DNA of 64,000 nucleotides from Haliotis cracherodii (lineage: Eukaryota), in NCBI RefSeq assembly GCF_022045235.1, contig NW_027266273.1, positions 4,712,001 to 4,776,000 on the forward strand, written 5' to 3'. Shown here piece after piece: positions 1 through 54,817 of this stretch; the stretch's first letter is position 1, and the number at the start of each line of letters is the position of its first letter. Both the position numbers and the translations under genes were made by a program. The notes under the pieces are model-generated. The model was given only the letters and a program-made list of their open reading frames with translations, made no database searches and had not been told where the DNA came from.

Positions 1-245
1 ATGATCATTACTTCTTCTATCAACTACTATTAAATGGCCCTGACAGGGCTGCAGGGATGTGGCTGAAATATTGCTGCTGTGGCACAAAACAACATTCACT
101 CACATGGGATTTGAAGGAAAGTGCTCAGAAAAGCTGCATGCAAAAATTGCTAAAGAAGAAGAGATTTTCGTTAAAGAAATTAGACAACTTTTTTTGTAAG
201 CCTGAGAGTCCCACATTGTAACTTAATATTCTTTAACTTCCTCAG

Positions 246-548
246 AGCCCCCAGGCCCCCCACTGTTTGTGCGGGTCAGCAAGATCACCAAGAAGTCTGT
301 CACTATTGACTGGGGTACGCCCTCTGACGATGGTGGCTCCAAGATCATTCGCTACCACATCTACACCTCAAAGAAGACAAGGGGAGAGTGGAAGGAGGTT
401 GCCAAGGTCAAGGCCTTTGACTCTGACTATGAAGTACAAGATCTTGAGGAAGGCCAAGACTACTTCTTCGCTGTTGCTGCAGAGAACGAAGTCGGCATTG
501 GCAAGATGGCAGAAACAGAAGCTGCTGCTAAGCCCCAGAAACCAATGG
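246..548 (+). CDS. FN3 exon 1 (phase 1-1)
   Basis: ctcag|AGCCC...ATGG|gtaag; EPPGPPLFVRVSKITKKSVTIDW...KPM. Confidence 0.93.
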
Positions 549-3500
549 GTAAGAGGAAGAGGATGTTGAAATTATCTCAGTAGACAAGTTTTGATTTATA
601 CTAATATAATATCCAGGTAATATTTCAGTAAAAATTGAAAGATCTCTTTTTCATTTTCTACTTTCTTGCAGAACGACCATCACCTCCAACCCCACCACTT
701 GAAGCCACAGACATTCAACGTGAAAATGTGACCTTGACCTGGAAGGCATCAAAGAGCGACGGTGGTTCGCCTATCTTGCATTATGTACTGCAGAAGCGTG
801 AAAGCTGGAAGACATCTTGGACAGAGGTCACTAAGGTCAAGCCGAATATATTCTCATACTGTGTCCAAAACCTGCGTGAAGGCCAAGAATATTACTTCCG
901 CGTGTTTGCAGAGAACCAGGTTGGAGCATCTGATGCCATCCAGACCGAGGTCGGCATTACTCCACGATCTCCATTCAGTAAGTACTTGGTTAGCATGTGG
1001 GTTTGGGGCTAAATGCTGGAATTCTAACAGGTTCTTGTTTACATGGAACTAACATGGCCATAAACAGTTTTGGACTTTTTGGGCCTGATCACTTTTAACA
1101 TTATACAAACAATGACTTTTGGCTGGGTCATTATTCAAAAACAAGGACCCAAGGACCCAACCCCTTTGCTGGTCTGACTGGACCGAGGCAATTGGCCATG
1201 GTCCAGTCGGAGCAACGAAGGGTTGGGTTAAACAAATAATGCAAAGTTTATTGTTTGTGTATGTGTTGTTGTTTACAATACTGATATTCCAATAACAACT
1301 TATATCCATTGTACGAATAACCATTTGTGACAGGATGAAATTGCATATTCAGAATATTTGGCTAGACCTGTTGTTTATTGTTACTGAATTCTTTTGCCCA
1401 AAATGCAGGAGGTGAAAAGGTTTTAACTGATTTGAAGCCAATTTCATCTGATGCTCCAAAAATATCCAAATATTATTTACATACTGTAAGAGTTACATAT
1501 TTTATTTGGAAATATCTGTTACATTTTATAATAGTCATTTTTTAGTATGTTGGAAAAGCTTTTGGAATAGAAGATCAAGAAATTCTATTTTCAACTTTTT
1601 GCAGGTTTATTCGTGGTCTGGCCTTGAGAATATCTTTTAATATCACCTGTTACTTCTGTGCTTAAGCTAATCATTGTAACAATGTTGTTGGTTGTTTGTC
1701 ACTAATGACCTATTCTGTTCACTATTTGGTGTGCTTCTACTCACATTTTGACCCAAACAGATTTTATGAGTATTTAATGGGGTATTATCTCCTCTCCAAC
1801 ACAGCTGTCAATTGTTTAATGGCGAGATCACTACACTAATAATTTTGCCCCTTGTTTCTCAAATATATTCTTTGGAATATTCATGACAGGATGTGCTGAT
1901 CAAAGGATTAAAATCTAGTTCCACCTGGATTATAATCCTTGGTCTGTCGACAGGGGCATGGGTGGCCCAGTCGTCTAAGGTGCTGCAATTCACTGTGCAG
2001 AGTTGCATCACTTGGGCATGTGGGATTGATTGTGGGTTTTAATCCTGGTTCGCTCCGATTATTTTTCTAGGTTTGTCAGCACTATACCCGTGATCGTGGG
2101 CTTTACCAAAGTGGTAAACGTCTGAGACTTCCTTCACTTCGGGGTTTCCTCCCACATTAAGCTGACACGCCGTGATATAACTGGAATACTGTTAAAAGCG
2201 GCGTTAAACCCAACTCACTCACTCACTGGTCTGTCAACAATTTACCTAAATTTACCCATGTTACAATATACCGGTAGGCTCTACACCAACATTAAGCTGA
2301 CATGCTGTCATATAATGTTGAAATTAGAGGTACACCCAACCCACTCACTCTTTTACCACCTCAGTGGTATAGTTGATAGAACGTCTGCCCAGAGCGCAGA
2401 ATGCTGGTGGTTCGATCCCTGGAAGCATCATAACAAATGACATTTGACAGTTCTGTGTTGCACCCATTGTTGAATTCCCGTAACACCAGTCATGCCGAGA
2501 CAAGAAGGAAACATTCTCACATATGTAAAATGTGCATTTCTAAAACCTGATCTTAAAAGTTAATTTGCGAAATTTTGGATTTGGATTGGTGATATATATT
2601 CCGAGCAGTGAGTCTGTTTGGCTAATCTGGTCAACCAGGAGCTCTGGCTGTAACACTGACTTGGAATCAATATTGGAATTCAAGATGTCTGCCTCATTTA
2701 ACTTTTATATTAATGTTGTTTCATTGTTGTCTGGGATGACTAACTGTGACTAACCATTGTTCTATTAACCAATCAAATTACAGATGTGCCTTCAGCCCCA
2801 GAAGGCCCTCTTGAGGTACTAGAGATAACAGCCCAAACTGTAACTATCCAATGGAAAGCACCCAAATCTAATGGTGGCCTTGCCCTTACTGCTTACTACA
2901 TTGAGCGTCGTGACAAAAAACACACGTCATGGCTTAAGGTGGACCAGGTGAAACCCAGTATCAAGTCTTATTGCATTCAGAAGTTGATGGAAGGAAATGA
3001 GTACTTTTTCCGTGTGATTGCTGAAAATCCAGAAGGACTCTCAGAACCATTGGAGAGCCTTGAAGCTGTCATGCCCAGGGAGAAACCAGGTTAAGATGTA
3101 GATGCTGTTAGCTGTTACTGTATAGCAGAACAGATCCATTCAAGTACACAGCATGCCTACGCAAATGTCTTTACCAACATTTTTGTCGATTTATTAATAT
3201 ACCTTTTATGAGTGATTTTCATCAATTTATTTGAAATAAATATGCAGACTTTTATGTATTAACACACAATTATTCATAAATTTGGATATATTATACTACT
3301 CAACCTTTGATAAGGATAATCGAATATGTCATTCTATTAAAAAATACAATCATTGAAAGATAAAAGTATAAGTAGTATGTAATTTTTGTTTCTTTAGATT
3401 AATATTTATGGAAAAAATATAGAGTAGTTATAGATATTACTATAATCATCAATGTATTCCAAATCAAAGTAATATATTGTCGCAATAAGCCTTCCTTCCT

Positions 3501-6500
3501 GAATTAATAACAGAACAATTTCTGCCTCTAGCTCCTCCTCTTGCACCGATTGGACCAGTCCGCTTCCACAACATCTTGGCAACATCTCTGGCACTTGATT
3601 GGCTGCCTCCGAGAGACGATGGTGGAGAACCAATCACAGAGTACCTCATTGAGGCCTGCTTGAAGGGAGGTGAATGGTTTGAAGTTGGAAAGACAAACTC
3701 AACCACCACCAAACTGAAGGTCAAGGATCTTAAGGAGGGCAAGACGTACGAATTCCGTATCTGTGCACGAAACAAGATTGGTCTTGGCAAACCACTGGAG
3801 TCTGAGCCTGTTGTACCATGCAGACCTCCAGGTGAGATTGTACATCTTCTAGACAGGCAGGACTAGAAGGGGGTTCACACCTATCAAATAGTGTCGTATC
3901 CAAACTAATGCATTGCAAATTTTAGTTTAATTCCACCATCAAAGTTCCTAAGTGTGGTATAACTATCATTAAAATACAGATATATTTGTCAATATCTGCT
4001 ATCCAGAATTGGAAATAAACAGAGATGAAAAATGCTTATCTTAATTCAAGTGCTTTCACATGAAAATGATTGGGATGTATAAATATTCATTCAAAATGGG
4101 AAGCTCTACCTACACCTGACGTGTGATATTGCCTCAAGCTTTGTCCATTTATTGCATTCCATCCAACTAAGACCATCTGACAGTAAATAACTGGTCATGT
4201 TTAACTCATTTGCCATGAACTTCTCTCATGATACTTGTGCATGGAAATAACAGTCTTCGTCTCCCTTCAACAGAGGTTCCATCTCGACCAGTTGGACCTA
4301 TCAAGGTGTCTGACATCACCAGGTGCTCCTGTGTTATTGCCTGGAAGGAACCAGAGGATGATGGAGGCTCGCCTCTCAAATCCTACATCCTGGAGAAGCG
4401 AGACATGAACCGTACTAAGTGGAACCGAATTGACAAGATCGATGCTTCCATCACCAACTTCTGCTGCCAGAACCTCCAGACTGGATCGGAGTATTACTTC
4501 CGTGTCAGTGCTGAGAACAAGATTGGAGTTAGTAAACCACTTGAGATGGACAAACCAGTTCTCATCAAGAGTCCTTATGGTGAGATATATTTTCAAGAAT
4601 GAGTGGTATCTTGTGTGTCATATCTATAAGGTAAAGAGGAAATCAGGTTCATTTTTAAGAAAAACAAGGCCGTCTTGTGGTTAAAGCAGTCACTTTTACA
4701 TGAGGATTCAATTCCCCACATGGGTACAATTTGTGAAGACCATTCCTTTTTCCCCTGTCTTGGTGTTGCTAATATTATAAAGCATATCCTTTCACAAGAA
4801 CACTGTCTTTTTTCAGATGTTCCATCAGCGCCCAAGTTCCTAAAGGCAGCTAATGTCAATGAGAAGACAGCAGACATTGAATGGAAGGCACCAGATAGTG
4901 ATGGAGGTCGACCTCTCACCGGCTACATCATCCAGTTCCGTGAGTCACGTCGTTCCATCTGGAACACCTTCTGTGAAGTGGAAGCCACAATGACCTCCAT
5001 CAAGCTGACTGACCTGGTTCCTGGCAATGAGTATGTCGTGGCTGTAGTAGCAGTTAACGAAGAGGGACAGAGTCCCCCAGCCATCCTCTCTGAGCCAATC
5101 AGACCACAGAAACACCTCAGTAAGTTCTACTCAGATATAGACACTTATCAATTCTCATTTAACAATTTTTTTAAACTCTTGAGTCTTTGGTTTTATTCTA
5201 AAGTTTCCTTCAATATGAGGTGTGGTGGGATCTACCATATGTCAAGGATATAAAGGTATATATTCAATATGGGTATAACATGTCCAGTCTTTTCTTCGTC
5301 TCTCTGAGGGGCGGTGGGGTAGCCTAGTGGTTAAAGCATTTTCTCATCACGCCTAAGACCTGGATTCGATTCCCAACATGGTTACAATGTGTGAAGCCCA
5401 TTTTCAGGTGTCCCCCGCCATGATATTGCTGGAATATTGCTAAAAAAGCGGCATAAAACTATACTCATCCACTCACTCATCTCCCTGTTATATGCGGGAA
5501 TAATTCTGAAAGCAGAATCAAACACTGGTACTCACCTCTGCACCAAAAGGTTGCCAGCATCATTAGTTAGTATCCTTATATCAGTGGTTGAAGTCTCCTG
5601 CAGCAGAATCAATTGCTGCTTCATCTTTATGATGGCAATAAGTTTACATATCCTTTTGCTGCAGAGGGTTGTCCTTGTTGCATAAAACCCTGGGGATGAA
5701 ATAGTATTTCTGTTAGTAACGAAACATTTGGACAAGAAACAGTAGGGTTGCCATTTGGTAATCCCATTTGAGTACAATATGTGAAGCTGATTTTTTATGT
5801 CCTGTGATATTGCAGGAATATTACTAAAATTGATATGAAACCAAACTTACTCACTTAAGCTTTTAGGAAATGGTTTAAGGATTATGTTTAGATTCTCATT
5901 CACTTCCTTCAACAGGAGTTCCAGGACCACCGGAGGCCCTCCAGCTGAGGAACATGACCAAGGTGGGTCTTACCCTGGAGTGGAACCCACCATCAGACGA
6001 TGGCGGCACCAAGGTCCGACGCTACCACATCGAGACGTGCACCATCGACAGCAAGGAGTGGGACCGAGTGGAGACAGTGGAACATTACCGCTCACACTGT
6101 GGAGTGTCAGGACTGAAACCCGAGGTGGACTGGTTCTTTGCTGTCGTTGCCGAGAACGATGTTGGTGTCAGTGAACGCTGTGTCTCCAAGAAGCCAGTTA
6201 GATTTGACAAACCAATTGGTAAGATTTTGACGTGTATATTTTGTTCCAATTGCATTAATATTCATGAACCAGTGGTGTTAATGGAAAAACATTTGTCAGA
6301 CATATTTGATAAAGGGAACAGACTGGTTGCTTGAAGAGTCAGATTGAAAATCCATTAAAGCAAAGCACATGATGCAGAGTTATAGTAAAACATAGGAAGA
6401 AAAGGAGTTAAATGGAGACAATGATGTCAATGCTTTTGATAGTCTGAGACAAATGGGTAATGGGCTGTTGGGGTGGTTTGATGGTCAATGGGTTCAATAC

Positions 6501-9500
6501 TTTTCATGTGGACAACAAGTGAAGCCCATTTATGATGTCCTATGTCATGTTAAGGCTACGTGTTGACTAATATTGATGTTAAATTCTGTTCTAACAAAGT
6601 AAAAAACTCCACACTTTACAGTTGCTCCATCACCACCTGTTGGTCCAATGGTGGCTTCCGACGTGAACCGTCGTGGTTTCCGCGTAACCTGGAAGCCAAG
6701 TGAGAGAGATGGTGGCTCCCCCATCACAGGCTACGTTGTAGAGAAGCGTGAGGCATGGAAGTCCACATACCTTCCAGTGGAGAAGGTGCCAGCCAAGGTG
6801 CTGAGCTGTGACCTGACTTTCCTCATTGAGAACCAGGATTACATGGTTCGCGTCATGGCAGAGAACATTGTCGGACAGTCTGAACCGCTGGAATCAGTCG
6901 ACCCAATCACAGCCAAAAGCCCCTACTGTGAGTAGCCATGGCTTTTTACAGGCTTGTACATGACCTTGTGATAGGAACATTTTGGGGAGATTAAGTTTGA
7001 ATAACAGTGATGTTATTATATCAAAATCATGAGGACTTGGAATATTATTATTGATAAATATGCTTTGATTGTGTCAGTTACAGTCAAAAAGAAAAGTTTC
7101 ACTATCAATAGACAAATAAGACTAGACTGGTCATATAACTGTGAGTGAGTGAGTGAGTGAGGTATTAAACAACGAACAAAAAATTATTAGAGCAAACAAA
7201 TTTTTAATCTACATGTATCTCCCATGACAGCACCACCTGGACCACCAGAGTCTATCACAGCCGCCGACAGCACAGAAAGCACTGTCACACTCAAGTGGAA
7301 ACCACCCAAGACAGATGGAGGTCTGCCCATCAAAGAATATATTGTGGAACGTCGGGACAAGAAGTATGGATCATGGATCAAGCAGGATGTCACTCGTGGC
7401 TCAATCCTCACCCTAGAGGTCACCAGGCTGACCGAGGGCACACCATACTTCTTCCGTGTCTTTGCTGAGAACGAAGAGGGTATCGGAGCTCCGTGTGAGA
7501 TGAAAGAACCAGTCATACCAATGCGAGAGCCAAGTTAGTAATTGATTTATTAATGAAATTCATAACGCCATCTTTGAAAAATATGTAAAAGTTAATTTAA
7601 TCATTTATGCATCAAATGTACCTGTCAGGATTCCTGTGCAGAATAGGTCCAGGGCTTGTTGTAATGGCCGACTAAAATGAGAATCGGATGGTCACAATGT
7701 ATGACAATGTGTGTATCATACCCTCATGGCCTGATTGTAATGTAGGTTTAGTTGGCCCAGACTTTTTTATTTAGAAATCGCTGTGATAGTTTGAATATTT
7801 TTGACTGTGTAAAACAACACTCACGTATATCATGCAACTTGTAAATAAGCTTTGAAATGTAAAAAAAATGAATATGATCTCATTTTCATTTCAGAGCCTC
7901 CTGGTATTCCAATTGGACCGATCAAATTCCGCGACATCGGAGAAGACTTTGTGACACTGGACTGGCACCCACCCCGAGATCCTGGTGGCATCCCCATCAT
8001 CGGCTACAAGGTGGAAGTAACAACTGACCTTGACACCTGGACCGAGGTGGCCACGACAGACTGTGGCATTACTTCAGTCAAAGCTAAGGAGCTGATACCA
8101 AACAAGAAGCACTACTTCCGTGTGTTCGCCATCAACCGTATTGGCAACAGCAAACCCCTCGAGTCGGAACCTGTCGTGCCCCACAGGCCCCCAGGTCAGT
8201 CTCTAACCCCATGTAACATTGGCTTGGAATAGGTGATTACATGTCCATAAACATGTAGGGATCTTGTTGCTGTGACTATTGTGAGTCTATGTGCACAGTT
8301 GTGTTATGGTACTAAGATCTGTTGTGTAACAATGCCTGACAAAGAGTAGCTTTATTTACTGCAACATCATGGCCAAGGGGTTATATCACTCATCTATTTT
8401 AGTGCTGCAAATACTGTAAGTTACCTGAAAAGTGGCTCATTTACTGAGGAATTGTAAATGAAATAAGTATTGAAGTTAATGCAAAGCTAACATTAGTTTC
8501 TGTTATAAGCATAGGCGGATCCAGAGGGCAGGGGTCCAAGAGTCTGGATTTTTAAGTTTTTTTACAACTTCAACTCTCCAAACACCACCCCCTCTTCTGA
8601 CAGAGGAATTTGACATTTTGGACCCATTCCTTTTAAAAAAAATCATGGATTCATCTCTTGTTTCACCATGAACTGTTCTTGCACTGTTTATGACTGTGTC
8701 TAGGTTTGGTTTTTTTGCCAATGCGGGAATCAGTATTCCTTTGATATTCGTAGATATATTTCCAATAATGAAAAGTCGTATTTGGTAGATCAAACATCAC
8801 CATAAGATAAGTCAATATTTAACATGCACACATTGGTATTCACTATCCAGGTGCACCAGGCAAGCCAGTTGGTCCAGTTGAAGCTATGGATATTGAACGA
8901 GAAGCAGTGACCTTGACCTGGAACCCACCAGAGGATGATGGTGGCAGTCCAATCACTCACTACCTGCTGGAGAAGCGGGATGTGATGAGAGCCCATTGGT
9001 CACATGCAGAGAAGACCTCTAGCACCACATGCAAGTCCAAGGTGAAGAATCTGACAGAAGGAACCGAGTTCTACTTCCGTGTCATGGCTGTCAACAAGAT
9101 AGGAGCTGGCATACCTCTTGAGAGCAGACCCATCTTAGTCAAGAGTCCATTTGGTAGGCATTTCTCTATCAGTCCGGTGATGTTTAATGTAATGGATTCC
9201 TGTTCATGTAATAATTTCTTGAAATTGAAACAGGAAACAGCAAGAGTAACCATTTGTTTTAATTGGAAAATTTGCAAGATTCAATAAATACTGAGGTTTT
9301 CTAATTTGAACAAATATGTTACCAAACTGATCTTTAATAGTGTTCAAATCTTGATGTTAAACGTAATGTCTTCAGATGTACCATCTCCACCTGTTGGCCC
9401 TCTGGCCATCTCCAACGTCACTGACTCAACGGCTGACCTAGAATGGAAAACATCAGAAGATGATGGCGGTTCACCAATCCTCCATTACGCTATTGAGATC

Positions 9501-12500
9501 CGTGAATCAAGACGTAGTATATGGGGCCGTGCTGGTGTAGTAGATGCCAACACATTGACTTTTACAGCCAAAAACCTGGTGGTCAACAATGAGTACTTCT
9601 TCCGTGTCCGAGCAGTCAATTCTGAGGGAGAGAGTCTGCCTCTAGAGGGTGTTGACTCTGTCACTCCCAGCAAGAAGAAAGGTAGGTTGAACACATGAAG
9701 CAAGAAATACATGGGATGTCACTCTGTTCAAGTTTCTCAGTTGTCTTCTTGATAAAAGACTAATATGGATAGCTTCAGGTATTTGTAGGGCCACACAGTA
9801 TTTCATTCTGCTTTTGATCAAGTAAAGTCTTGTAAAAAATTCACAGCCTGGATCGTAAACCCCAAAACATTTTGATGAACTTGTGCAGTCACCATTATCC
9901 CAGTAGTTTCTCCAGATTCCCCGTGGTAAATTCTGACATGATTTCCCAATGACAGGGGCGACGCCATGTTTGTTTATAAACACTGAATGTAGTCACTACT
10001 TGCCCTTTGATATTTGTTTATCTATCATATCTATCCACATATGACCCCAACGGGTATCATTCTTATCTGTTGGCTTTATTCTGCTGAGAAACCTACCCAT
10101 TATATGATGAAACGTGTGATTGAGACCCCCTTGCTTTGACGAAGACAGTTTCCTCAGACTTCTTGGCCTACCAGCACATTCCTGGATATGGATTTCTCGA
10201 TATCCAGATTGTATTGTGATCTCTGTCTTCATCTTCCACAGATGTACCAGAAGCACCAGCATACATCTACCCCGGCCGTGTCTCCGACTCGTCCGTCACA
10301 ATCGACTGGAAGGCTCCTCTCAAAGATGGCGGTTCTCGCGTCAAGCAGTACCATGTGAAGATGACCGAGGACAAACCAGGCTCACAGTGGCTGGATCTGG
10401 GATCAGTGGAAGCCTACAAGACATCATTCAAGGCTAAAGACCTTGACTCCAAGAAGAAGTATCTGTTTGCAGTGGTGGCAGAGAACAGTGTTGGTCTCAG
10501 TGAGATGAGCGTTACAGACAGACCAGTGTCAGTCAAGACTGTTGTCAGTGAGTAGACAAATCTTCCATCTTAAAGCGAGCTACAGAGTAATAACCCAAGT
10601 ACTCTTGCTATTCTTAATATGGTGATTACATGGTTACAATGACTGTTGAGCTTGGGGGATAGAATTGAGTTACTATGATGGGATAGCTGGCTTTAAAAAA
10701 GCTTTTGTTAGTGTGTCACCATACTAAGGTAATGACCCCCTGGAGTAGAAATCCTTGGAAGAATAAGTAAGGATAAGATTTATGGATGAACAATTTCTTT
10801 ATTACAACTAAGAGTGACGTTTCGTTGTAGGTTCCAACACCATTATCAAACAAGTGATATACAGAGTATGGTTGACAAGTAGAATAGGTAGAGACCCATG
10901 TTTGGTGCATAAGCTCACTAAAAGAAGAAATGGATGCTCAAAATGTGCAACCTTGCTGATTGTGTGTCATGAGATGCCATCCTGACATCAACCAAAATGG
11001 CCCCTTTTAGATGAAAATTTGCTCTCTGTGCAAAAACCAGCATTCCATTCACTTTATGGGTACACATAATTTGGCTGATGGTTTGTCGGAATCAGATTGT
11101 TACAGATGTAATGATGCTCCCTAATGCAAACTTCTTTCCTTGTCCCCAGAGCCACCATCACCACCTGAAGGACCTCTGAAGGTCATCAACCTGAGAAAAG
11201 ACGGAGTCACCCTGTCCTGGATGCCACCCGAGGAAGATGGCGGTGCTCCAATCACTCACTATCTCATTGAGAAGCGTGATGCGTTCAAGACCAACTGGAG
11301 TCATGGAGACAGGGTCAAGGCCAGTCAAACCACAGCTGACATCGACTACCTGACCCCAGGAAACAGCTATCACTTCCGGGTCCTGGCTGAGAACCTCGTT
11401 GGCATCTCAGATCCTCTACTGTCAACTGAGCCTATCACACCAAAGAGTCCATACAGTAAGTATTTTCATTTTTAGAGAATTTAAAATGCAATACCAGACT
11501 AGACCAAAAATATTCTTGTAATTAGAATAAGCCTAACTAAACTTTTGTAGACCAGGGTTTGATTCCTGACATGGGTACAATGTGTGAAGCCCATTTCTGG
11601 TGTCCCCAGCCGTAATATTGCTAAAAGCGGCATAAAACAATATATTCACTCACTCACTCCATATCATGAATGGACTCATTTTGTAAAAAGCTATTGTAAT
11701 GTGATTGGCTGTGCTTCTGTACTTTAACGTAGCACTATAACACTGCAACCACTTTATGAAACAAGTCCCTTGTCATATGTCTTTTGTCCCTTGCTAAAGG
11801 ATACGATTTTTTACCCATATTTATTCAATATTTGAATACAGTGAGCTAAAAATGGCCTCAGAACAAATCATTTACAAGTTATGTTCTTCCAGATGTGCCC
11901 TCGCCACCAGTTGGGCCACTGGAGATCACCAGTGTGGATAAGAATTCAGCCACCCTCAAGTGGAAGCCATCAGAGAGTGATGGAGGACTTCCTATCAAGC
12001 ACTACGTCATTGAGCGTCGTGAGGCCAAGAGACAGTCCTGGTTGCGTGTGGACAGTGTCCGCCCCACCACTCACAGTTTCACCGTGGAGCGTCTCATTGA
12101 GGGCAATGACTACATCTTCAGGGTGTTTGCTGAAAATGATGAAGGCCTAAGCCTGCCATTGGAATCTACTTCACCAACATCGTGCAGACGTCAAGCAGGT
12201 CCGTGTTTTGAGAAGCAGACATGAAACTGATCTTATCACTGTTACTGTTGCCATAGTCATCAATTTTGCAAATCTATCTGAGTAAATTTTACTTTTTATG
12301 AGGCAGATTGTTGAATGGATTTTAAAAAATTGATGTTCATGGGTGTGGTCACAATAAAGAATAACACACAAGATTGTTCTTTCAAGAAAAGCACATATTT
12401 TGTTGGCCCGACTTTGACATAAAAATTTCTTACTTACTCAAGGTAACTGTTATATCTCAAGCTTATGATCGTATTTCATTGTGTGAGAGGTTATGTTAAG

Positions 12501-15500
12501 TTAAATCATTCATTAAGTTTTTGTGGAATATGTTTTGATAATGATTATGTTATTTTATCTCACATATGAAAATGACACCAACTTTTAATATTTTCCTCCT
12601 AGAACCCCCTGGCCCACCATCAGGCCGAATCCGAGCCAGCAAGATCACTGCCGACTCCGTTATGCTGGACTGGCTGCCTCCCATCGACGATGGTGGCTCC
12701 CCAATCACCAAGTACATCATCGAGGCTCGTGGGGCCAGTGACACCGATTGGAAGACCATGGCTGAAGTGGACTCTATTGCCACCAGACAGAACATCCGGA
12801 ACCTTAAAACTGGAGAGGTATATGACTTCAGAATCGCTGCAGTGAATGCAGTCGGACGCAGCAAGCCTAACAACCTGGACACAACTGTCAAGCCAATAAG
12901 ACCACTTGGTAAGTCAAGACTATCAAATCTATTATGACATTTTTCAGATGTCATTTTAAAAGATTAAAATTCATTTTGTATTTCTTTACCATTAACTAGA
13001 AGCTCCAGGTAAGTCAGGACTATGGAATCTATTGTTTGATTTTATAAATGTGATCAAGTTTAAAAGATTAAAATTCATTTTGTTCTTTCTTACCATTAAC
13101 CAGAGGCTCCAGGAGCTCCTAGAGGACCTCTGCAGCTTACCAACATGAGGCGTGACACTGCCACGTTATCATGGCAACCACCTCTTGATGATGGAGGCAC
13201 CCCAGTGACAGGCTACACCATTGAGAAGAATGACATGACCCGCAATGCTGGCTGGATGAGGGCAGCAAGAGTCGCCGGCCCCGTCACCAACTACACTCTG
13301 TCCAGTCTCGTAGAAGATCACTCGTACATCTTCCGCGTGTCAGCAGAGAACAAGATCGGACTTGGTGCTCCACTAGAAATGAAGACAGCTGTTGTTGCAA
13401 AGAGCCAGTTTGGTGAGATCTGTTTTTATAAAAAATATTAGTTCTGGCACGTTTTAGTGCTCTAATATAATCAGACATAATATAACAAGACATTGGACAT
13501 GCAAAATATGGCCTGTATTGGTCTGAAGTTTCATCTCAAAAGTATATGTACTACAATGAAAAAACCTTGTTTGTTGTACATGAACAAAAACCAAAAGGAA
13601 TCAACAAATAGTCAAAATTTCATTGCTAAATACCTTGTAACAAACAATTTATGACAACTGACATCACTTTAATGGTGGCGTTCTCCTGTTAGATGTTCCA
13701 TCACCACCCAGTCGTCTGCGGGCTTCTGATGTCATGGACGAGACAGTTGAACTTGAATGGCTGCCGCCAGACTTTACTGGTAACCTTCCCCTTACTGGTT
13801 ATGTTGTTGAGCGTCGCGATGCAGACAGGATGCAATGGCAGAGAATCGGCAACACCACACCTGATGTGACCAAATTTGAGGCCTTGAACCTGTTGGAAGG
13901 TCGTATGTACATGTTCCGCGTGATGGCGGAGAATGCAGAGGGTCTCAGTGAACCGGCCATGTTGCCAAGACCCATCATGCCCGAGAGACCAGTTGGTGAG
14001 TGACGGTTCCAATATTTGTTTGACTGGATCTTTATTGCCTTTTGGCAGCGTTCTTTGGTAAATTAATCATGGACTCTGCTCCTTGGTATGTTTCCAATGT
14101 CCAGTCTAGGTCAAGATATTGTAATTGTTCCCATGTATGAAATGAAGACATTGACTCTGTGTAATTTAGGTAGTCTTGCCCTTTTCACGAACACCTGGTG
14201 TCATCACTGATTTTCAGTGCCCCATTCATATAATTGTCACCGCTATTTTGCCTTTAACGCCCAGTGGAATCTGTTTCAAGAAATAATCAAGATTCTCTGG
14301 TGTTGATGTTTTTATGTTTAACTTCAAAATTGATATACATCAGTGGTGCTTGCATGAGTTGAATCAAGCTTTCTGGGACTGCCAATTGGCTTAATTGAAC
14401 TTTGTCACTTTTGGGGGTTGCAAATAAGATCATGTGACTAAATGATGACATGACTGCATCTTCCTGTGGTAAATGTTGTAGAATGTGGTTGAGAGACACC
14501 TCAGAGTCCATCTGTTAGCTGAAAATATCACTGTACTGCTGCATGGTAGATGATGCTCACACTATCGGCCACCAGTTTGCCTACTCCTGACCTAACACAT
14601 TCTGAAAGCTGCTGAGATACTCACTGATCCTGCTTATCCTTTGTGCACAGATCTACCCGGACCTCCAGAGGACCTTCACGAGACAGCTGTGGACCGAAGT
14701 ATGGTGTCGCTGACATGGCGCCGACCACAGTATGATGGTGGCGCTGTCATCACAGGATACAAGATCGAAGAAAGAGATGGCAAGGCAGCCACCTGGGTGA
14801 CGGCTGGAGAGGTTGGAGGCTTTGACCTCATGTACGACGTCCGTGGACTTATTGAAGGATATGAATACTTCTTCCAAGTCAGCGCCAAGAACATCAGAGG
14901 CTATGGTCCACCTGCTGAGCTGAAACAGGCCATTGTGCCATCTAAGCAGAAGGGTGAGTGACTTTACAAACTTTGTCAATACAATCTGTGAAGCTTCTCA
15001 TTACAATTTACTCAATAAGGTATGTATATTCAAATTAATGGTTCGATTAAACAAATTAGGAAAGATTTCTCAATATTCAAGGCGTTTTCAATATGATTTA
15101 AGAAAAAAATTGGCCCAGTGTTATTACTTGAAATGAAGATTTCCTGGTTTCTATTCCCTAAATTATATATGGTGGCAGGTTTTGTCGTCCCTTGCTGTGA
15201 TACAATATTATGCAAGCTCTTTCATAACTTTCATTTACTCAATTTGATGACAGTTAGAAAAATGTCAGTGGCTATCAATGTTTCTTGATGTTGTTCCTCA
15301 GGTAAACCATCCCGCCCAGTTGGTCCACTCCAATGCAGCAACATCACCGACGACTCTGTGAAGCTGTCATGGCTGCCGCCAGAGAGTGATGGAGGGTCCA
15401 GACTGACTGGCTACATTGTAGAGAAATCTGACATCAGACGTCCAACATGGCTACGTGTTGGCAAGGTCAGTAAAACCTGATTCACTCACTCATTGATTAG

Positions 15501-18500
15501 ACAAGCACAAGCACAAGATTTGTCATACATGCTTGATCATGGAGCATTAAACCTTTGCCTTATGTGTAAAGCCCATTCCTCCTCTAGTTTACTATCTAGT
15601 CCCTTGGGAATTCCAAGTCAGAATATGTCCCAGGCAACTGATGCTTGTCACACATGACTAAATGGATCAAGTGTCTATCTCATCCTATGGATTCAGGACA
15701 ATATGTAAACAATGTTTATTTTTATCATGTTAGAAATCATACAATTAAACTTCAAAATTATCCTGAACTGCAATAAATGAAAGTAACTTTGGTAATAAAA
15801 ATTGTATTGTCCTATATAGAAATGGCATAATTACTTTTATATTGAGGATCATCGTGGTGCACAGTATACAATTTTGTTGGTATTTCTAGGTTGATCCTGA
15901 TACAACAACACTGAAAGTTGAAAACCTCCTCGACAACGTTGGCTACTTCTTCCGTGTAATGGCTGAGAACGCCGTCGGAGTGGGTCAGCCTCTTGATAAT
16001 GAATCTCCCATCATTCCAAAGAGTCCATACGGTAAGGAATAAAAATATATTCATGAAGTTGTTTCTGTTATCGTTTTATTTTTGAATTCTCCAAGAAACG
16101 TCACTTAGATTTGTTAATATATGCATGTACGTTTTAATCTGAAATCAATGTTTTTGAAAATCAAACTTCATATTGATATCTGAGACCAAATATAACTTTT
16201 CTTGACTCCAATTTCATTTTTGTATTTCTTTCACTTTTAGGTCCACCAGGGCCCCCTACTGGACCAATCAAATCAATGCAGATGACCCGCGACTCTGCAA
16301 CCTTCCAGTGGGAACCTCCAAGTCAAGATGGTGGCTCAAAGATTACTGGCTACATCATAGAGAGGCGAGAAGAAGGCAAGAAGTCCTGGATGTATGTTGG
16401 CCGAAATGATGCCGACAATCTTTCCTTCTCGGCCACTGGACTGACCGAAAATATGGACTACTACTTCCGAGTGTACGCTGAGAACAAATATGGCCGCAGT
16501 GATGCTCTGCAGTCAGAAATTCCCATCATACCTAAGAGAGTATTTGGTAAGTACAAGATGTTGTTTTATTCATTTGAATTATTCTGTTTGAAATCATACA
16601 GTTTTAGGTGATGGTATTTTCATTTTTTAAAGTTTTTCATTTTTATAATATATATTTATTATATATTGTATTTTTTTTAAATGACCAAATTCATAAAGAA
16701 AATTATACATAAGTCATTCAGTTACAATGACTTAGCAGTACAGTGATATTTTCAGTTACAAATTGTAACGTTCATTCAGAAATGTTTTGTCTAGAAATTG
16801 TATGATTTCAACTTAAAAATACTTAAATGAGGCTTCTGTTTTGCCCACAAGTGAGTATTTATCACAGCTTATGTTAGTACTGGTTTGTTTTTGGAAACAC
16901 TATTATCTAGAAATTTATCTATTTTGTATCACAGATTCATTGAGTTTAACTTTTTAAAGTTCAATTTCTACCATAAGCTGTTGATGGATACGTCAAGTGG
17001 GATTGTCCACTGGTTTTGGGTTTGCAATGTGGGGGTTTGAACCTGTTTCCATGACGACTTCTCTGAGGCATGGTGAAGGGGCGTGGCACCATGTACGCAT
17101 ATGGCCAGACACGCCCCCCCTTTCTGTGTGACATGGTGTGGACAGTATATTCCTTAGCAGATGTACTTAGACCCATTAGCATTCAGCCCACAGTACAGTC
17201 TATAGGTAGTTATGTTATGTACATTCTTACATAGGCGATACTTTCTGATAAAAGTAAAAATATATTTTGAATTACAAACCACAGATATAAAAAAATAAAT
17301 GACATTTACAATTTTTAAGGGATTTGATAAAAGACATTTTATCATATTGTTTTATCAGTGAAGATTTTGATTGCTGAATTCAACATTTTCATTTAAAATC
17401 ATGATAAATATTCATGCATACATTCAGAGTATTTTTTCTGGGTTGGATGTCAAAGGTCAGTTTCAGTCTTGACCTGAATCAGTGAGTCTATCTGATATAT
17501 TCAACCCACAATCTGCAATATACCTTCACCCTAGACTTAATACAACTAGTATAAATACTATGGTTGAGTACATGGAATAGAGGTCCTGTTTTTTCTCCAT
17601 TTCAAGTCTAGTTCCAACAATAGATGCACGATTGATACAGTAGGTGTGTGATCCGTTTTTATGATTAGAGTTACCTCCCCTTCAAGTGAGTGTTGGCAAT
17701 TAAGAGTGACAAAGTCACATGTTGACTGGTGAATATAACTGAAAAACTGTTCATGCAATGCATGTATGACAGCATGAAATACTATTCCAACATAAAATAT
17801 TACCACATGGTAATATAATGATAGAGTTATCTCCCCTTCAAATGAGTGTCAAAAATTAATAGAGACAAAAATCACATGTGGACTGGTGAATATAACTGAA
17901 AAAATGTACATGTATTCACAGTTTTCATGTAAAGCTCGTAAGATAGCATGAGATATTATTCTAACATGAAATATTACCGCCTGGTAATATAATAATAGAG
18001 TTATCTCCCCTTCAAATGAGTGTCGAAAATTTATAGAGACAAAATTGCCGGTAAATATAACTAAAACACTATACATATGTTCACAGTTTTCATGTAAAGC
18101 ATGTTATGTGGTATGAAAGACTATCATAGTATTACCACCTGGTAATACAGTGGAGCCTCATTGTGTCGAGGGGTGGTCTGGCAGCCTAGTGGTTAAAGCG
18201 TTCGCTTGTCACGCGGAAGACCCGGGTTCGATTCCCAACATGGATACAATGTGTGAAGCCCATTTCTGGTATCCCCCACCGTGATATTGCTGGAATATTG
18301 CTCAAAGAAGCATAAAACCATACTCACTCACTCATTCGTGTCAAACTTTAAAGTGTCAAATTCCCTGTTGTTTCTGACTCATTTTGGAGTCCCAAGTATT
18401 TCAGTTAAGCATAAATTCCCCTGATGTCTCGAACCCTACATTACTCAGCCATTTTTCCAACTCCCCACAAGTTCTCCACAACGAGGTTTGACTGTTTAAT

Positions 18501-21500
18501 GATGGACACAAACACTTCACATCGTGGCTAAATAAAGGGGAGATAGCCTCAGTCTGACATCCAGCTTTATCTTAACCCTTAGTGCCTCTATATGTATGAT
18601 GTCCTTGCTTGTCTCACTTAACCTTCTTGCCTTGTGTTTGTGGTGCATGGTGCATGTGGAAATCTTGTAATAATTCTTTCATTATGTCATTTCTTTCAAC
18701 TTGTCAGTCTGTTTATGATATTACAGTCAAAATGTTTATTATCGAGACATTTTTCAAAACTTGTAACACGAGTAGAGCTCCATGTTGAGCCAATTTCATT
18801 GGTGTAATTGTTTTCAAATAAAGTAATGTTTCCCTGTTCTATCCTAAACAGACTGATTGTACTTTAACTTTTTAATCAGTAATTTGTTAACCAAGACTGC
18901 TGCTGCTCTGTGAAGCTGTTGAAGCATCTAACATTGAAATTATTGGTTCAGTTTTCGTTGATCTTCTGTATACTTACTTACCTTTCCTCTGGTGCTTCTT
19001 TGCAAAATTAACAAAAGCTTCCTATGAGATATGGTCTCAGAAGTTCAAACATTTTGAGGAGGAATAACACCATGATAATTGAAAGGATTATATGTAATTT
19101 ATTTCCTATAACTGTAAACAAGTAAGGATGCATTGGAAAAGATATTGTGAATGAATTGAAACCCAGAATTCTAGACTGCATATTTCTTGATTATTATTCG
19201 GAAAAATATATGATATCATGTTATCTATCTATAGCTGCTTTAACAATTGAAATTTGAATTTAATATATATTTTTTGGGGAAAACAAATTGACAGGTGTAT
19301 TCATGTAATTTTCAAAATTATGAATCCTTGACGCTTTCTCTGCATCCTTCTATGAGATTTATGAGATTAAAAAATATATTATCTTGATTATATATCAAAA
19401 TTTTCTATAAGACACATTGTGGTATCTACAATAATCTCTATACTCTGTGTTGGGCTTCCTTGATTAGCCTGTGTATTATTTCTCAATTCTATTGGGATGA
19501 ATATCCTGGACTCATTTGTTACTATAGCTTCGATTTGAGCCAGATTCAAATTAGGTGACAACTAAGATTGCCATCAAATCAAATAACTCTAAGACTGAGA
19601 GAATTTCTGTGCTAAGCTGGTCAAAGGCTAGATGAAGATAGTGACGTCTCTTTCTAATGAAGCTTCGATGGCAAATGGGTCCAGGGTATTTATTGTACAA
19701 AATGGAGATATAATACCCTGGATAGTAGAGGATGAGTGTTGGAAAGTCAATGGTTGACGTGTCAGCAGCTGTCTTGGTTAACTCTCTGTGACAACTCACA
19801 TTCTCAACGCTGCTGTTTCTCTGTTTCTCCAGAATACGCTGGGAATAGTTGGCTCCGCCAGGCAAACCTTCAACCATGTATTAATGTCTACATGATTCAG
19901 AATCTAACAAGATACGAGTATATCTATCGTGTATACGCTGACAACCCCCTAAGCTCTGTGTGGGATTCCATAGACTTGAGTTCTATTGCGGGACGATTTT
20001 AACAAATTGATTGTTATCCAACCACACATTATATTCTCCTAACAACTTATGGTGTGAAAGTTCGGAAATTTGATTTAATTTGACGCGTTCTCATTTCTCT
20101 TAACATATTAACCACTAATTTATTATTCATTGCTAAAAGCTTTCTGATTTAATTTTTAATGACTAACATTTGTACATTCTATGACTAATATCTGTACATT
20201 TATGTATGGTAACTTTGTTAACATTGTTAGTTTTCTTATTTCACTGATCTCTTTGTTGATATTGATATTAACATATTTCCTTGGCTGTGTCTGGAGCATA
20301 TTCACCTGATGGGCATTAATCATCAGAGATTGTGAGTTGTGTTCATTTTCTGCATTTGCGTACCATTATTATTGCTTCTTTCTGCGCTGAAGCTGTCATA
20401 TAGACGCATGCGAATATTTGGCTTTTCCAGCTTTTGAGGTATTAACAATGTACCAAAATTGCATAAATTTCAGGAAACATGTCATAATGTCAAAAGTAAA
20501 TATTGATGTTTGGGGTGTTTCATTTTGGCCTTTACTTAAACATAATTTGTTTCCTTTTCTGTTTGAAATTTATTAATGTGTCATTTTCGGTGACTGTAGT
20601 TATCTCCCCTGACTTGATATCTACAGTTGCAATTATATTGTTGGGCACATTTGTAGATGCCAAACAGCAAAGGAAATAGTTCTGTTTAAAAATGTTTATT
20701 GAAAATATAATGCGCTTTGCTTAAATCTGAAATATTTATCGATGGAAAACAAATCTCTAATGATTTCGGCCCTGACCCTTTCACTTGTATTATGCTCCAT
20801 ACACAGATGATTCTATGTGTTAAACTGTCATTTGTGAAGTCAAATATCTCCTCTTTAATTGCTATAGGTTTCCCTCGGTGAATAAATCTTTATAACTGTT
20901 GGCGATGTTATTTTGTTATCAATATTGTACCATGTTGTGTATATTAGTGTAGACTAGATGTAGTCAATGTTGTCTATAACAGCACTCACGTTGCATACAC
21001 AGACAATATGTTGTCGTATTACAGGATCAATGCTGAATGGCTCACGATGCATGGATAGGAAAGTTTTTGGATCAAGTGTTATAAAACAGTTACATGACAG
21101 CTATAATAAAGTGGTATTTTAGAAGCTGTAATGTCCATGAACACTAATGGATTCAACTTATTTATTAAGTTATTTGGAAGTTTTACACAAATGATTCATT
21201 CTTGGTTTCAACATCAGAAAGTCTGATGCTGATCTCAAAGAAATGTCATTAAAATCAGATCTTAGTTCACCCTACCACAAAACAAAGATTTGAGGACATT
21301 ACGGGTCATGTCATACGACCTTACATTCGCCCAATCAGGGCGTTGCTTACCAGATCAGGAAAGTGACATTCGGAGTGTATTTTCTCTTCATGTAACCTCG
21401 AAAATGTTAACACAGGGTTTTACGAACGACAGTTACAGGTTTTATGACCAAATCCATACAAGCTGGGCCATTTATTAACCATTCTAGAATGTTGTTTTGT

Positions 21501-27500: not shown

Positions 27501-30500
27501 GCAACCTGAAATGTAATGAAAAACTAAAAAAATGGTTTGCTATAAATATTCATTTAGGCTTCAGTGACCTATCTGTGTATTCAGTCTTTATCAACCAGTT
27601 CTGGATTACACAGGTTCAGTAATCATTTAAATATTTAAAGGAGGAATAAGCAACAACAACAAACATTATTAATGTGTTGTTGTGCCAGAGCCACCTTTAT
27701 ATGTAGCATTAAAAAAATGAAAATGATTTGTATGAATGCTGCTGACATAGCTTAATTATCAGTTATGATGTGCATACAAACAGTCAACAATAGAGCTGTA
27801 TGATATACAAATACATTACATTTTAAAACAGGTCCACTACAGCTGTATGATAGAATTATAAAACATGTTCAGTACAGCTGTTTCATATGATTATAAAACA
27901 GGTTCAGTACAGCTGCATGATATAAATCCTAAAACAGGTATAGTAGGGAAGTACGATATGATTATGAAACAGGTTCAGTACAGCTGTATGATATAATTAT
28001 AAAACAGGTTCAGTAGAGCTGTATGATATAATTATTAAACAGGTTCAGTACAGCTGATATAATTATTAAACAGGTTCAGTACAGCTGTATGATGTAATTA
28101 TGAAACATGTTCAGTACAGCTGTATGATATAATAATAAAACAGGTTCAGTACAGCTGTATGATACAATTATGAAACAGGTTCAGTACAGCTGCATGATAT
28201 AATTATAAAACAGGTTCAGTCCAGCCGTATGATATAATTATAAAACAGGTTCAGTACAGCTGTATGATATAATTATGAAACAGGTTCAGCAGTGCAGCTA
28301 GTTATGTCCTTCAACGTCTCAACACACTGATTCTCCACCACAAGAGACTGGACAATGCTATGACCTATTTACAAGTCCTCGTGAAAAGACTGAAGGAACA
28401 AACAGTCCCAAAGAAAACATGTCACATCAGTTGGCACAATTCACTGTGCAGGATTGCGTCCCTTTGTTGTATAAGTATCTGCTGATCATGAGGTCGACTC
28501 CCTTGTTGTTGTCATCCTTGGTTTGTCAGCTCCATACCTACGGGTTTCACTTTGCCCTCACGTAAGTGGACAGAGGTGGTGGGGTAGCCTCTTGGTTAAG
28601 GTGCTCATCACGCCGAAGACCCGGGTTCGATTCCCGATATGGGTACAATGTGTGAAGCCCATATCTGGTGTCCCCCACCATGATATTAATGGTGTATTGC
28701 TTAGAGCAGCTTAAGACTATACTCACTGACTCATAAGCGGATATTTAAGCGGTTTAAAGATGACACTGAATCAGGTAACAGATGGCCATGTGGTCCTGTC
28801 AAAACTGCGTTATCTCACACACTCATTATGTATTTTAACTTAAGTGTGTCTGTGATATGGAATGGTTGAGTGATGTTGGGTTTGATGCTGCTGTTGACAT
28901 TCAATATGTTTGTCACAGTCTGTCAGCTTCCTGTTGGAGTAAACACCAGAAGACAAAACCAACGAGTATTGGTATTTACAGACCAAAGATCACAACATTG
29001 GCAAGCCAGTGGAACCTTCAGGGCTGTACTGCTAGTCACTGTGCAGAGTTGTATCCCCTAGCCATGCCAGGATCCTCTGATCATAGGTTCAGACAATGTT
29101 GTCTGATAATTATCTGTGGTTTGTCAACAATGCTTATTAGTTTCATATTATCTCTGAGGTATCCTCCCACTTTAAACTGCAGTACTGTTCAAAGCAATTA
29201 AACCCCTATATGGGATTGTGTAGCTTCCCTTATCATGGACCTGGCAATCATATATTCATGCGCTCTGTATGTCTTGCAGCTCCACCAGAGGCACCAGCAT
29301 CATTACGGGCGGAGAACATCGACAAGGATTGTCTCACCCTTGTCTGGAACCCACCAGAGGACGATGACAGTATCACTGGCTACATTGTTGAGAAGAGGGC
29401 ACAAGATTCTGAAACCTGGGAACGTGTTGCACATGTGCCAGGCAAGACTACAGCTCGCGATGTCATTGGTCTGCCAGAAAACCAGTCATTCTTCTTCAGG
29501 GTCATTGCAGAAAATCCTGCCGGAGTTAGCCCCCCTGCTGAACTCCGACTTCCTGTTGAGCTGAAGGCAAAGAAAGGTAGGAGCAATCTAAAGAAATAGG
29601 TTACAGTAAATAAATATTTGTTCATGATTTAAGATTTCATTTTGCGTATATTGGTAGAATAATTCATTCCAACAGTCATCCTAGAACATATGAAAATATA
29701 TTTTACGTAATGTTTGCTAGTTGTTCGTTGTTCACATATCAGCACTTGTAGATGAACAGGCTTTCTTTTCTTTTTTGCCTTGAACATTGTGTGAGAGTTC
29801 GGTTTCTCAGCATGCTTTAAATGTTGATTTTTGTAGTTTCACAGTAGTTATACACAGTAGTTGAATGCACAGGTTTTCTATTCTAGGTATCTGTTTACTT
29901 TTTACTCTGACTTGCTAAATACATCATTATTTGTGGCATGACAAGTGTATTCCAACAGTGTATTCCCATTGTATTTAACTACATGCATGAACCTTAATCT
30001 ATATGCCTTTAATTCATTTCAGATTTATTTTCTTTCATAAAGGTTTGCTAATTATTAACACCTAATGTCAAATGTTCAAACAAATCTCTTGAATAAAGCA
30101 TGATACAAACATTTGTTGTTGTTTATTTCTCTTCTTTTTTTTCACTGAATGGATGATAACATGTGTGAGTTGTTTGAGTGTGAATGCATGACCTTGACCC
30201 TAAAGTTTGCTGTGACCTTTCTGTGATTAAACCTTGACCTTTCCTTTGCTGTCAACCTATGACCTCATTATCCTTGACCTATCTATTGCCTTGCTTGTTC
30301 TTTGTGCTTCATACTTCTGTCTGTATATTGTGTGTTGTCAAGTTTGGAAATTGTGCCTCAGTTGGATATATTACACCAGTATTTTACTATGAATTATTTT
30401 CAAAAATATATTTGGACACTATACTGCTTAAAACCTTTTTCATATTTGGGGTAACATGCAGCATTGATCTTAAAAAAATACCATTTTTTAATAATCAGGT

Positions 30501-54500: not shown

Positions 54501-54817
54501 GTTGAAAGTGCTGTGGCCGTTAGGGTTGTACGAGAGGTTTGTGAGGAAATAAAAGTTGCAAAACATGTGGTTGAGACGCAACAAATATACACAACAAACA
54601 TTCAGGAGGAGGTAATCCAGTCCGAGACACTGACAGAGACACATGTGGCAGTGGAAAGGTGCGTGTTGTCAGGCCTCAGTGTAATTCAACCTTGGATAGG
54701 ACGTAGTGAAAGTCAGGTTTGATAAGCTGCTTCTAATCGTCAAGGAGAGGTAATAGGCTATGATTCCTGTAAATGTTTTGAAATAACAGTGACTCTTCAC
54801 GTCATCTGCCCTCAGAA

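Follow-up and report, generated by a model that had tools for sequence, protein, structure and literature searches.

An Ig-free array of FN3 modules with three- and six-module periods in a titin-family gene of Haliotis cracherodii

The view that titin and twitchin read or set the periodicity of the thick filament relies mainly on their super-repeats. To our knowledge, every super-repeat described so far mixes Ig (immunoglobulin) with FN3 (fibronectin type III) modules. A 64,000-nucleotide stretch of the Haliotis cracherodii genome (GCF_022045235.1, contig NW_027266273.1, positions 4,712,001 to 4,776,000 of the forward strand; hereafter the window) carries 21 consecutive FN3 modules with no Ig module among them at positions 246-16546. 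The window contains the C-terminal 21 of 50 uninterrupted FN3 modules, probably the A-band-type part of a giant muscle gene of the titin family, which would provide a lattice on the thick filament. The N-terminal part of the run is a plain three-module repeat that apparently is still being amplified, the C-terminal 24 modules are block-copied units of six (hexads), and Lottia retains the same module order.

The locus shares several features with the A-band of vertebrate titin: one module occupies one symmetric exon, conservation is position-specific, and the modules end in the order Ig-Ig-FN3-kinase. In both, a zone of short super-repeats and a zone of longer ones follow each other, the longer repeat being derived from the shorter, and titin FN3 modules are the nearest solved relatives of the modules in the window. 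In contrast to titin, the repeat described here contains no Ig, has periods of three and six rather than seven and 11 modules, extends over only ~50 modules, and accompanies a kinase that resembles twitchin more closely than titin in sequence. Twitchin and projectin also have a three-module period, an FN3-FN3-Ig-Ig-FN3-kinase-Ig end and a twitchin-like kinase, but in Haliotis the third module is FN3 instead of Ig, there is a long N-terminal Ig zone, and the gene is a paralog of the twitchin ortholog. Uninterrupted FN3 runs beside Ig modules are also present in gene models of Lottia, Lingula, Saccoglossus and Ptychodera, all of which are unstudied. The Lottia modules are one-to-one orthologs, whereas the hemichordate runs are of a different FN3 type and look separate. 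A first-pass annotation of the window described an all-FN3 super-repeat unlike those of twitchin and titin. The absence of Ig and the periods of three and six agree with this description, although the shared three-module period makes the FN3-FN3-Ig triplet of twitchin less remote than was proposed.

The available excerpts of earlier articles describe lophotrochozoan titin features only as "more mixed" (PMC12063666), treat titin evolution without an all-FN3 super-repeat (PMC12198301), count 24 Ig and 15 FN3 modules in Mytilus twitchin (PMC12040844), and mention only fragmented titin contigs (PMC5549309). A literature search found no description of an all-FN3 super-repeat in such excerpts, although the mollusc and annelid titin drawings (Fig. 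1A), table S1 and file S1 of PMC12063666 may depict FN3 runs. A conserved Ig-free lattice with periods of three and six in animals with paramyosin-core filaments would offer an independent test of whether module period follows filament geometry, and of whether Ig is needed at all. Moreover, two stages of super-repeat growth are visible in one gene in which old hexads adjoin triplets whose copying apparently continues. In practice, the benefit is modest: an exon-by-exon map for the annotation of giant genes that public models fragment.

Extent, periodicity and transcription of the FN3 array

Stop-free frames on the + strand were the starting point for the FN3 calls, and 25 open reading frame (ORF) pieces covering the FN3 candidates were tested against Pfam. 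All searches were performed exon by exon. Modules of the window are designated D1-D23 and those of the whole gene F01-F59, with D1-D21 corresponding to F36-F56, and D22 and D23 to F57 and F58. Twenty-four of the 25 pieces matched PF00041 above the Pfam cut-off. The sole miss was the 50-residue C-terminal half of D20 (15890-16039) which our own FN3 profile matched at profile positions 55-101 (E 9.9e-14). Each module in the window is a single exon of 297-309 nucleotides with AG/GT borders and phase 1 at both ends, except D20 which is cut by a phase-0 intron (15302-15465 and 15890-16031) and whose halves were kept as separate rows. Gene-wide, AG/GT and phase 1 coincide exactly with the profile borders in 57 of 58 unsplit modules, and only F59 has an uncertain donor; in this comparison the identical copies F15, F16, F17 and F19 were placed at the coordinates of their twins, and these four rows are not independent. 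Pfam and the FN3 profile thus agree with the 21 consecutive + strand modules of the first-pass annotation and with its count of 23 when the exons at 29280 and 30813, both of which match Pfam fn3, are included. The positions 246, 16546, 29280 and 30813 of that annotation coincide with exon borders.

The 190 kb that precede the window were scanned in overlapping 10-kb pieces with the FN3 profile and with an Ig profile that was generated by jackhmmer from the complete Ig exon of the window. The FN3 profile detected 35 further FN3 exons between -33605 and -135, where negative coordinates are window-relative and lie upstream of position 1. The gene order on one strand is Ig zone, F01-F03, two Ig, F04-F06, two Ig, F07-F56, F57-F58, Ig-Ig, F59, kinase and Ig. 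The uninterrupted run F07-F56 comprises 50 FN3 modules, or 52 when D22 and D23 are counted after a 12.7-kb intron. It begins 25 kb upstream of the window which holds only the last 21 modules, and a repeat count that extends upstream thus reveals an array larger than was seen initially, with 50 modules and four hexads. ORFs that matched the Ig profile numbered 74 upstream of the FN3 zone, five in the transition, 12 downstream and zero inside the array. No Ig was found in the FN3 array from -25392 to 31150 among all ORFs of at least 25 residues on both strands at E values up to 50, and the weak hits were FN3 exons or noise. As a positive control, the same profiles detected whole and half Ig exons elsewhere in the gene, as well as Ig modules split over two exons in a twitchin locus on contig C11. 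The earlier view that the intervening introns conceal no Ig exons therefore was upheld.

Module identities were determined from a MAFFT alignment of the exon translations. Among D1-D21, mean identity was 41.1% at lag 6 (n=15) and 39.5% at lag 12 (n=9) compared to 31.6-36.9% at the other lags between 1 and 18. Pairs in the same phase of a six-module period were 39.8% identical versus 34.8% for the rest, a difference that was not reached in any of 5000 shuffles of module order. Shuffling gave the same outcome (0/5000) for D1-D18 and for the extended hexad zone. The peak between modules i and i+6 that had been predicted thus is present. When the entire run F07-F56 was considered, identities were raised at all multiples of three, ranging from 41.4 to 53.6% at lags 3-24 (53.6% at lag 3 and 41.9% at lag 24) compared to 35.0-36.9% at other lags. 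Modules F11-F29 form a plain three-module repeat with 78.2% identity at lag 3. The last 24 modules of the lattice, F30-F53, comprise four six-module units of which one copy is upstream of the window. Identities in this region were 45.0% at lag 6, 43.3% at lag 18, 42.1% at lag 12 and 39.8% at lag 3, and 33.6-37.0% at lags that are not multiples of three. Pairs separated by multiples of six were 43.7% identical versus 38.8% for those separated by odd multiples of three. Furthermore, when labels were shuffled only within module types, the observed within-class identity was reached in 0 of 5000 trials and the hexad therefore is real on top of the triplet. The basic period is the triplet A-B-C, as which the run from F08 (F08-F55) can be read, and the hexad combines two diverged triplets, (B C A') and (B' C' A), in which the position classes pair as c1 with c4, c2 with c5, and c3 with c6. 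The six-module unit put forward in the first-pass annotation thus stands, but its fundamental period is three and the pattern does not extend through D18-D21.

The position classes also were recovered in a maximum-likelihood tree of 58 modules from which the two halves of F55 were excluded. The tree is based on few columns and includes several long branches (F48, F54, F57), and single placements are unsure. Upstream type B (zB) and c1 formed a clade (support 94/87) that joined c4 (97/97), upstream type A (zA) and c6 formed a second clade (98/87) that joined c3 (86/93), and upstream type C was a single clade (90/83). Classes c2 and c5 did not resolve within the second main group, apart from upstream type C; the kinship of c2 and c5 therefore rests on lag-3 identities and on shared KSPY/KSPF ends. 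Class labels required 14 changes on the tree compared to a mean of 39.8 for shuffled labels, with 0 of 200 shuffles as low, which accords with the expectation that modules of the same position cluster. Class-specific lengths and motifs recur every six modules, as exemplified by 300-nucleotide c4 exons with PLESEPVVP.RPP ends: D4 and D10 measure 300 nucleotides, as had been noted, and D16 306 nucleotides. The motifs that were listed previously all are present and correspond to class consensus letters. Net charge showed a mild pattern only, with c6 and upstream type A acidic, and c5 and type C slightly basic. The alignment columns that distinguish the classes are not confined to one part of the module: they occur in several separate stretches and at the C-terminal end, near residues 16, 22, 28, 33, 41, 46, 71, 76, 80, 83, 88, 99 and 101 of D5. 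In terms of general FN3 topology, most of these positions would fall in loops, in the C-C' hairpin and in the linker.

Compared in register, hexad copies 1 and 2 were 50.3% identical, copies 2 and 3 45.1%, and copies 3 and 4 39.5%. This in-register similarity, the clustering of classes in the tree and the within-type shuffles support the block duplication that was suggested originally. A blastn self-comparison revealed almost no DNA-level similarity of the window exons among themselves. Among the upstream triplets, the copies F11-F19 show 96-99% identity over stretches of 780-865 nucleotides, introns included; three near-identical three-exon FN3 copies are located between about -18.4 and -13.1 kb, with a fourth that is less similar (86-89%). 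Thus, old and very recent block duplications coexist in the gene. The near-identical upstream triplets represent either recent tandem amplification or an assembly problem. The blastn comparison was used in place of Tandem Repeats Finder whose longest period of 500 is below the 1.5-1.8 kb of the FN3 units, and which under this ceiling found no repeat in the upstream piece with the triplet copies or in window positions 1-17000.

Splice joints were examined in the D1-D7 region (240-6230) with contigs from three runs, X1, X2 and X4. These runs are RNA-like: their RNA status is a software guess, and a word share of 0.2-0.3 over 240-6230 fits exon-only content. Contigs of all three runs join 547/671 (D1-D2), 3831/4274 (D4-D5) and 5119/5916 (D6-D7), those of X1 and X4 join 4579/4817 (D5-D6), and that of X2 joins 977/2784 (D2-D3). 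The five joints are situated exactly at predicted exon borders. The array thus is transcribed and spliced, as judged by RNA-like contigs over D1-D7. Module D3 is a cassette exon which is included in the X2 contig, whereas X1 and X4 join 977/3532 and skip it; depth over D3 was 3.9 and 8.1 in X1 and X4, respectively, versus several hundred to ~1900 in neighboring exons. Run X4 derives from a related organism and differs at 33 of 1796 exon bases versus 52 of 1075 intron bases. A further run, X19, behaves like DNA of a relative.

Gene family and conservation in other species

The gene displays the layout of the titin family. Module D21 is followed by a 12.7-kb intron, FN3 modules at 29280 and 30813, two I-set Ig domains, an FN3 module at 33327, kinase exons, Ig exons, a 292-residue acidic ORF and more Ig. 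Matches to Pfam I-set, fn3 and Pkinase occur in order at 31179-35904, and Ig ORFs come after the kinase. The nearest solved relatives of D5 and D1 are the titin chains 8g4l, 8q6t, 8bnq and 3lpw, which are thick-filament entries and A-band FN3 fragments, followed by MyBP-C and myomesin. Receptor FN3 modules score far below titin chains against D5 and D1, and the modules are of the intracellular sarcomeric FN3 type. An extracellular FN3 protein of the usherin or receptor type was ruled out by the contiguous Ig-Ig-FN3-kinase end and by the titin-type best matches.

The two kinase exons that were tested matched best to twitchin chains, or to MYLK4 and then twitchin, with titin lower. Four other loci with such a kinase exon were located in the genome, two of which are MLCK-like. 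The kinase exon of the C11 locus shares 62 of 68 residues with twitchin chain 1kob (126 bits), compared to 77 bits for the equivalent exon of the window, and identity between the two exons is 58%. We take 1kob to be an Aplysia protein. The same profiles read the modules before the C11 kinase as I-F-F-I-F-F-F-I-I-F-F-I-I-F. On these sequence grounds the C11 locus is the twitchin ortholog and the gene of the window its paralog. Accordingly, the 50-module run is devoid of the Ig of an FN3-FN3-Ig triplet core, the kinase of the window is not the twitchin ortholog by its score against 1kob, and the seven- and 11-module Ig/FN3 super-repeats of the vertebrate type are absent, the periods being three and six without Ig. 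At the twitchin ortholog (C11:12665201-12694020), many FN3 and Ig modules each occupy two exons, in contrast to the window gene with its one-exon modules. An unexplained minus-strand ORF (12692709-12692945), immediately ahead of the kinase exon, encodes the N-terminal half of an FN3 module. One of the MLCK-like kinase exons (C10:4862066-4862269) is on the same contig and strand as the window, ~86 kb past its end; a second kinase gene of the family thus adjoins the titin-like gene.

A search with the D5 exon against 1.84 billion representatives retrieved 19515 proteins at E ≤0.001, the best 150 of which were analyzed. Proteins P0001-P0004 show the titin pattern IFFIFFFIFFF, and P0005, which is named as Anopheles twitchin, consists of (FFI)n and ends in FFFIIFFIIFK. 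Among the best 150, FN3 runs beside Ig in titin-like or twitchin-like models extend to 18 modules in Saccoglossus, 15 in Ptychodera, 14 in Lingula, and 10 and six in Lottia. The string FFIIFFFIIF(14) of P0012 mirrors the transition zone of the Haliotis gene. Modules of Lottia P0023 had best hits in the order F34, F42, F43, F44, F10, F49, F50, F51, F52 and F53 with 39-61% identity, and six of nine adjacent best-hit pairs were exactly +1. Lottia P0046 matched F10, a type A module, a type B module, F25, F26 and F31 (58-68%). Module-for-module orthologs in the same order in Lottia indicate that the hexads are old, and the comparison with lophotrochozoan titin-like proteins that was advocated earlier thus discloses one-to-one modules that are kept in order. 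When modules were assigned with class profiles, the order c1-c6 was followed by 10 of 15 adjacent assigned pairs from the Lingula model and the two Lottia models (chance 1/6), a value that is indicative only as the models were picked from 150. Four proteins among the best 150 had class or type order at p<0.05, with high identity in the two Lottia models only, in a set that contains no full-length ortholog. Lag profiles were flat in Saccoglossus, Lingula, Lottia and two unnamed proteins, whose fragments are short and whose models probably lack some exons; best hits taken module by module were more informative than these profiles.

Hemichordate modules best matched the Ig-neighbor type represented by F02, F03, F05 and F06, and showed no period (Saccoglossus) or a period of two (Ptychodera). 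As they match the Ig-neighbor type and are without the three- and six-module period, the hemichordate all-FN3 runs look like independent expansions. The twitchin-like Ptychodera protein P0017 contains 15 FN3 modules that are 65-81% identical with a period of two (80.8% at lag 2 and 76.6% at lag 4), and is a different, recent all-FN3 expansion.

Interpretation of the FN3 lattice

By analogy with titin and twitchin, whose super-repeats are rich in FN3, the lattice would lie along the thick filament, where it may offer position- and class-specific binding surfaces at fixed spacing. Skipping of in-frame exons could change the length or register of the lattice. This interpretation is favored here, but a number of points weigh against it. 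Thick-filament binding is proposed from family resemblance. Titin spacing is ~4 nm per module and the myosin repeat is 14.3-14.5 nm. A triplet at this spacing would measure ~12 nm, a mismatch with the myosin repeat unless linkers are stretched, and the 50-module run would extend ~200 nm, which is too short for half a filament and bears no obvious integer relation to 14.5 nm. The array therefore is doubtful as a strict ruler, and the skipping of D3 in two runs, which breaks the register, also speaks against such a role. Modules D18-D21 are degenerate and off the hexad pattern. The RNA joints cover D1-D7, and continuity of the Ig zone, FN3 zone and kinase in one transcript is presumed. Finally, the Lingula model and unnamed fragments keep the class order only in part, and their own lag profiles are flat.

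More tentatively, the array might be a third "ruler" architecture, in lophotrochozoans, in which Ig-free FN3 triplets were doubled to hexads. This architecture would date back to the gastropod radiation, with part of it discernible in a brachiopod. The three-module period would be the ancestral binding period of the titin/twitchin family, with either Ig or FN3 as the third module, and the spacing would be matched to paramyosin-cored filaments, while exon skipping and triplet amplification would tune length between muscles and species. The paramyosin repeat is 72 nm, and under this proposal 18 modules (three hexads) would span it.

Alternatively, the FN3 run could be a passive spacer or elastic rod of the I-band or of a connecting filament, the periodicity of which is only a record of duplication. 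A rod of this kind would tolerate the skipping of D3 in some transcripts, as well as upstream triplets whose 96-99% DNA identity marks them as so recent that their number seems unconstrained, and the very long Ig zone recalls I-band titins. However, Lottia has one-to-one orthologs with 46-61% identity in the same order, so that position identity has long been kept. Moreover, the exons of X4 differ less than its introns, and the closest solved FN3 modules are those of the thick filament. A purely passive role thus is judged unlikely, and a lattice on the thick filament remains preferred to it.

The array might also be built of triplets alone, with the hexad a by-product of uneven divergence along the array. 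Identities at lags 3, 9 and 15 are raised in F30-F53 (39.8, 37.8 and 38.3%, respectively), and F08-F55 can be read throughout as A-B-C triplets. Uneven divergence is very improbable as the source of the hexad, in view of the within-type shuffles, the higher identity at multiples of six than at odd multiples of three, the recurrence every six modules of 300-nucleotide c4 exons and PLESEPVVP.RPP ends, and the retention of the six-class order in Lottia. That the gene is the mollusc twitchin itself, or an assembly or annotation artefact of twitchin, would fit the best matches of the kinase exons and the twitchin-like names of public models of related fragments, but is refuted by the much closer match of the C11 kinase exon to 1kob, by the interleaved I/F pattern that the same profiles detect at C11, and by the RNA-like contigs that support the exon joins of the window.

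Modules of the window and neighboring features

The modules and domains described below all are on the + strand, and every FN3 module matches Pfam fn3, D20 in its N-terminal half. Class c1 (type B) includes D1 (F36; 246-548; E 2e-12; 303 nucleotides with AG/GT borders in phase 1-1) which is joined to D2 in the X1, X2 and X4 contigs, D7 (F42; 5916-6218) which is the top match of module 1 of Lottia P0023, and D13 (F48; 10242-10547; E 3.3e-9), the most diverged member with a long branch within the clade of c1 and zB. Class c2 (type C) consists of D2 (F37; 672-977; E 3.2e-14; 306 nucleotides) with an RSPF end and with joints at 547/671 and at either 977/2784 or 977/3532, and of D8 (F43; 6622-6927) and D14 (F49; 11150-11455), the top matches of P0023 modules 2 (56%) and 5 (61%). 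Class c3 (type A') is made up of the cassette exon D3 (F38; 2784-3089; 306 nucleotides) which has the weak donor GTTAAG, and of D9 (F44; 7231-7533) and D15 (F50; 11893-12198), the top matches of P0023 modules 3 (58%) and 6. Class c4 (type B') contains D4 (F39; 3532-3831; E 7.3e-15) which is joined to D5 in X1, X2 and X4, D10 (F45; 7895-8194) with AG/GT borders, and D16 (F51; 12603-12908) which clusters with the other c4 modules in the tree.

Class c5 (type C', KSPY end) comprises D5 (F40; 4274-4579), joined to D6 in X1 and X4, whose nearest solved relatives are titin A-band FN3 chains, D11 (F46; 8851-9153) with AG/GT borders, and D17 (F52; 13104-13412; 309 nucleotides) which is the top match of P0023 module 8. 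Class c6 (type A) includes D6 (F41; 4817-5119; E 3.7e-16), an acidic module with a net charge of -2 that is joined to D7 in X1, X2 and X4, and D12 (F47; 9376-9681) in the clade with upstream type A (98/87). D18 (F53; 13693-13995) belongs to c6 by position, but is diverged and is placed with c3 in the tree; it is the top match of P0023 module 9 (59%). D19 (F54; 14651-14953) is past the regular hexads and has its highest identities to upstream type B, with a long branch and an unsure tree placement. The two exons of D20 (F55) span 15302-16031, with the C-terminal half matched by our own FN3 profile only. D21 (F56; 16241-16546) has AG/GT borders and is the last module before the 12.7-kb intron.

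Beyond that intron, D22 (F57; 29280-29576) groups in the tree with a clade of Ig-neighbor FN3 modules and precedes D23 (F58; 30813-31118; E 1.3e-16). The two I-set Ig domains match Pfam I-set in ORFs 31179-31382 and 31445-31771, and 31965-32384 (span 31179-32384), the coordinates being those of the ORFs. The FN3 module before the kinase (F59; 33327-33647) has its uncertain donor at 33611 or 33647. The Ser/Thr kinase exons (34201-36960) belong to the twitchin/titin/MLCK branch; both of the two exons tested match Pfam Pkinase, other kinase ORFs were assigned by eye, and the nearest solved structures are twitchin kinases and then titin. The acidic 292-residue open frame at 53844-54719 is of low complexity and is situated between Ig exons downstream of the kinase.

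Several features were noted in the introns. The sole FN3-like piece in the 12.7-kb intron, at 19736-19999, weakly resembles the second half of an FN3 module (E 0.007). The D16-D17 intron (12908-13113) includes two adjoining stretches of ~100 nucleotides that are 80% identical and constitute an intronic tandem duplication. Summed contig depth over the intron stretches 1840-2240, 4640-4840 and 5240-5640 was ~10 to >100,000 times that of neighboring bins, with peaks at 2040-2239 and 5240-5439, and many false joints were recorded among the three stretches. These stretches are high-copy interspersed repeats that appear both in RNA-like and in DNA runs.

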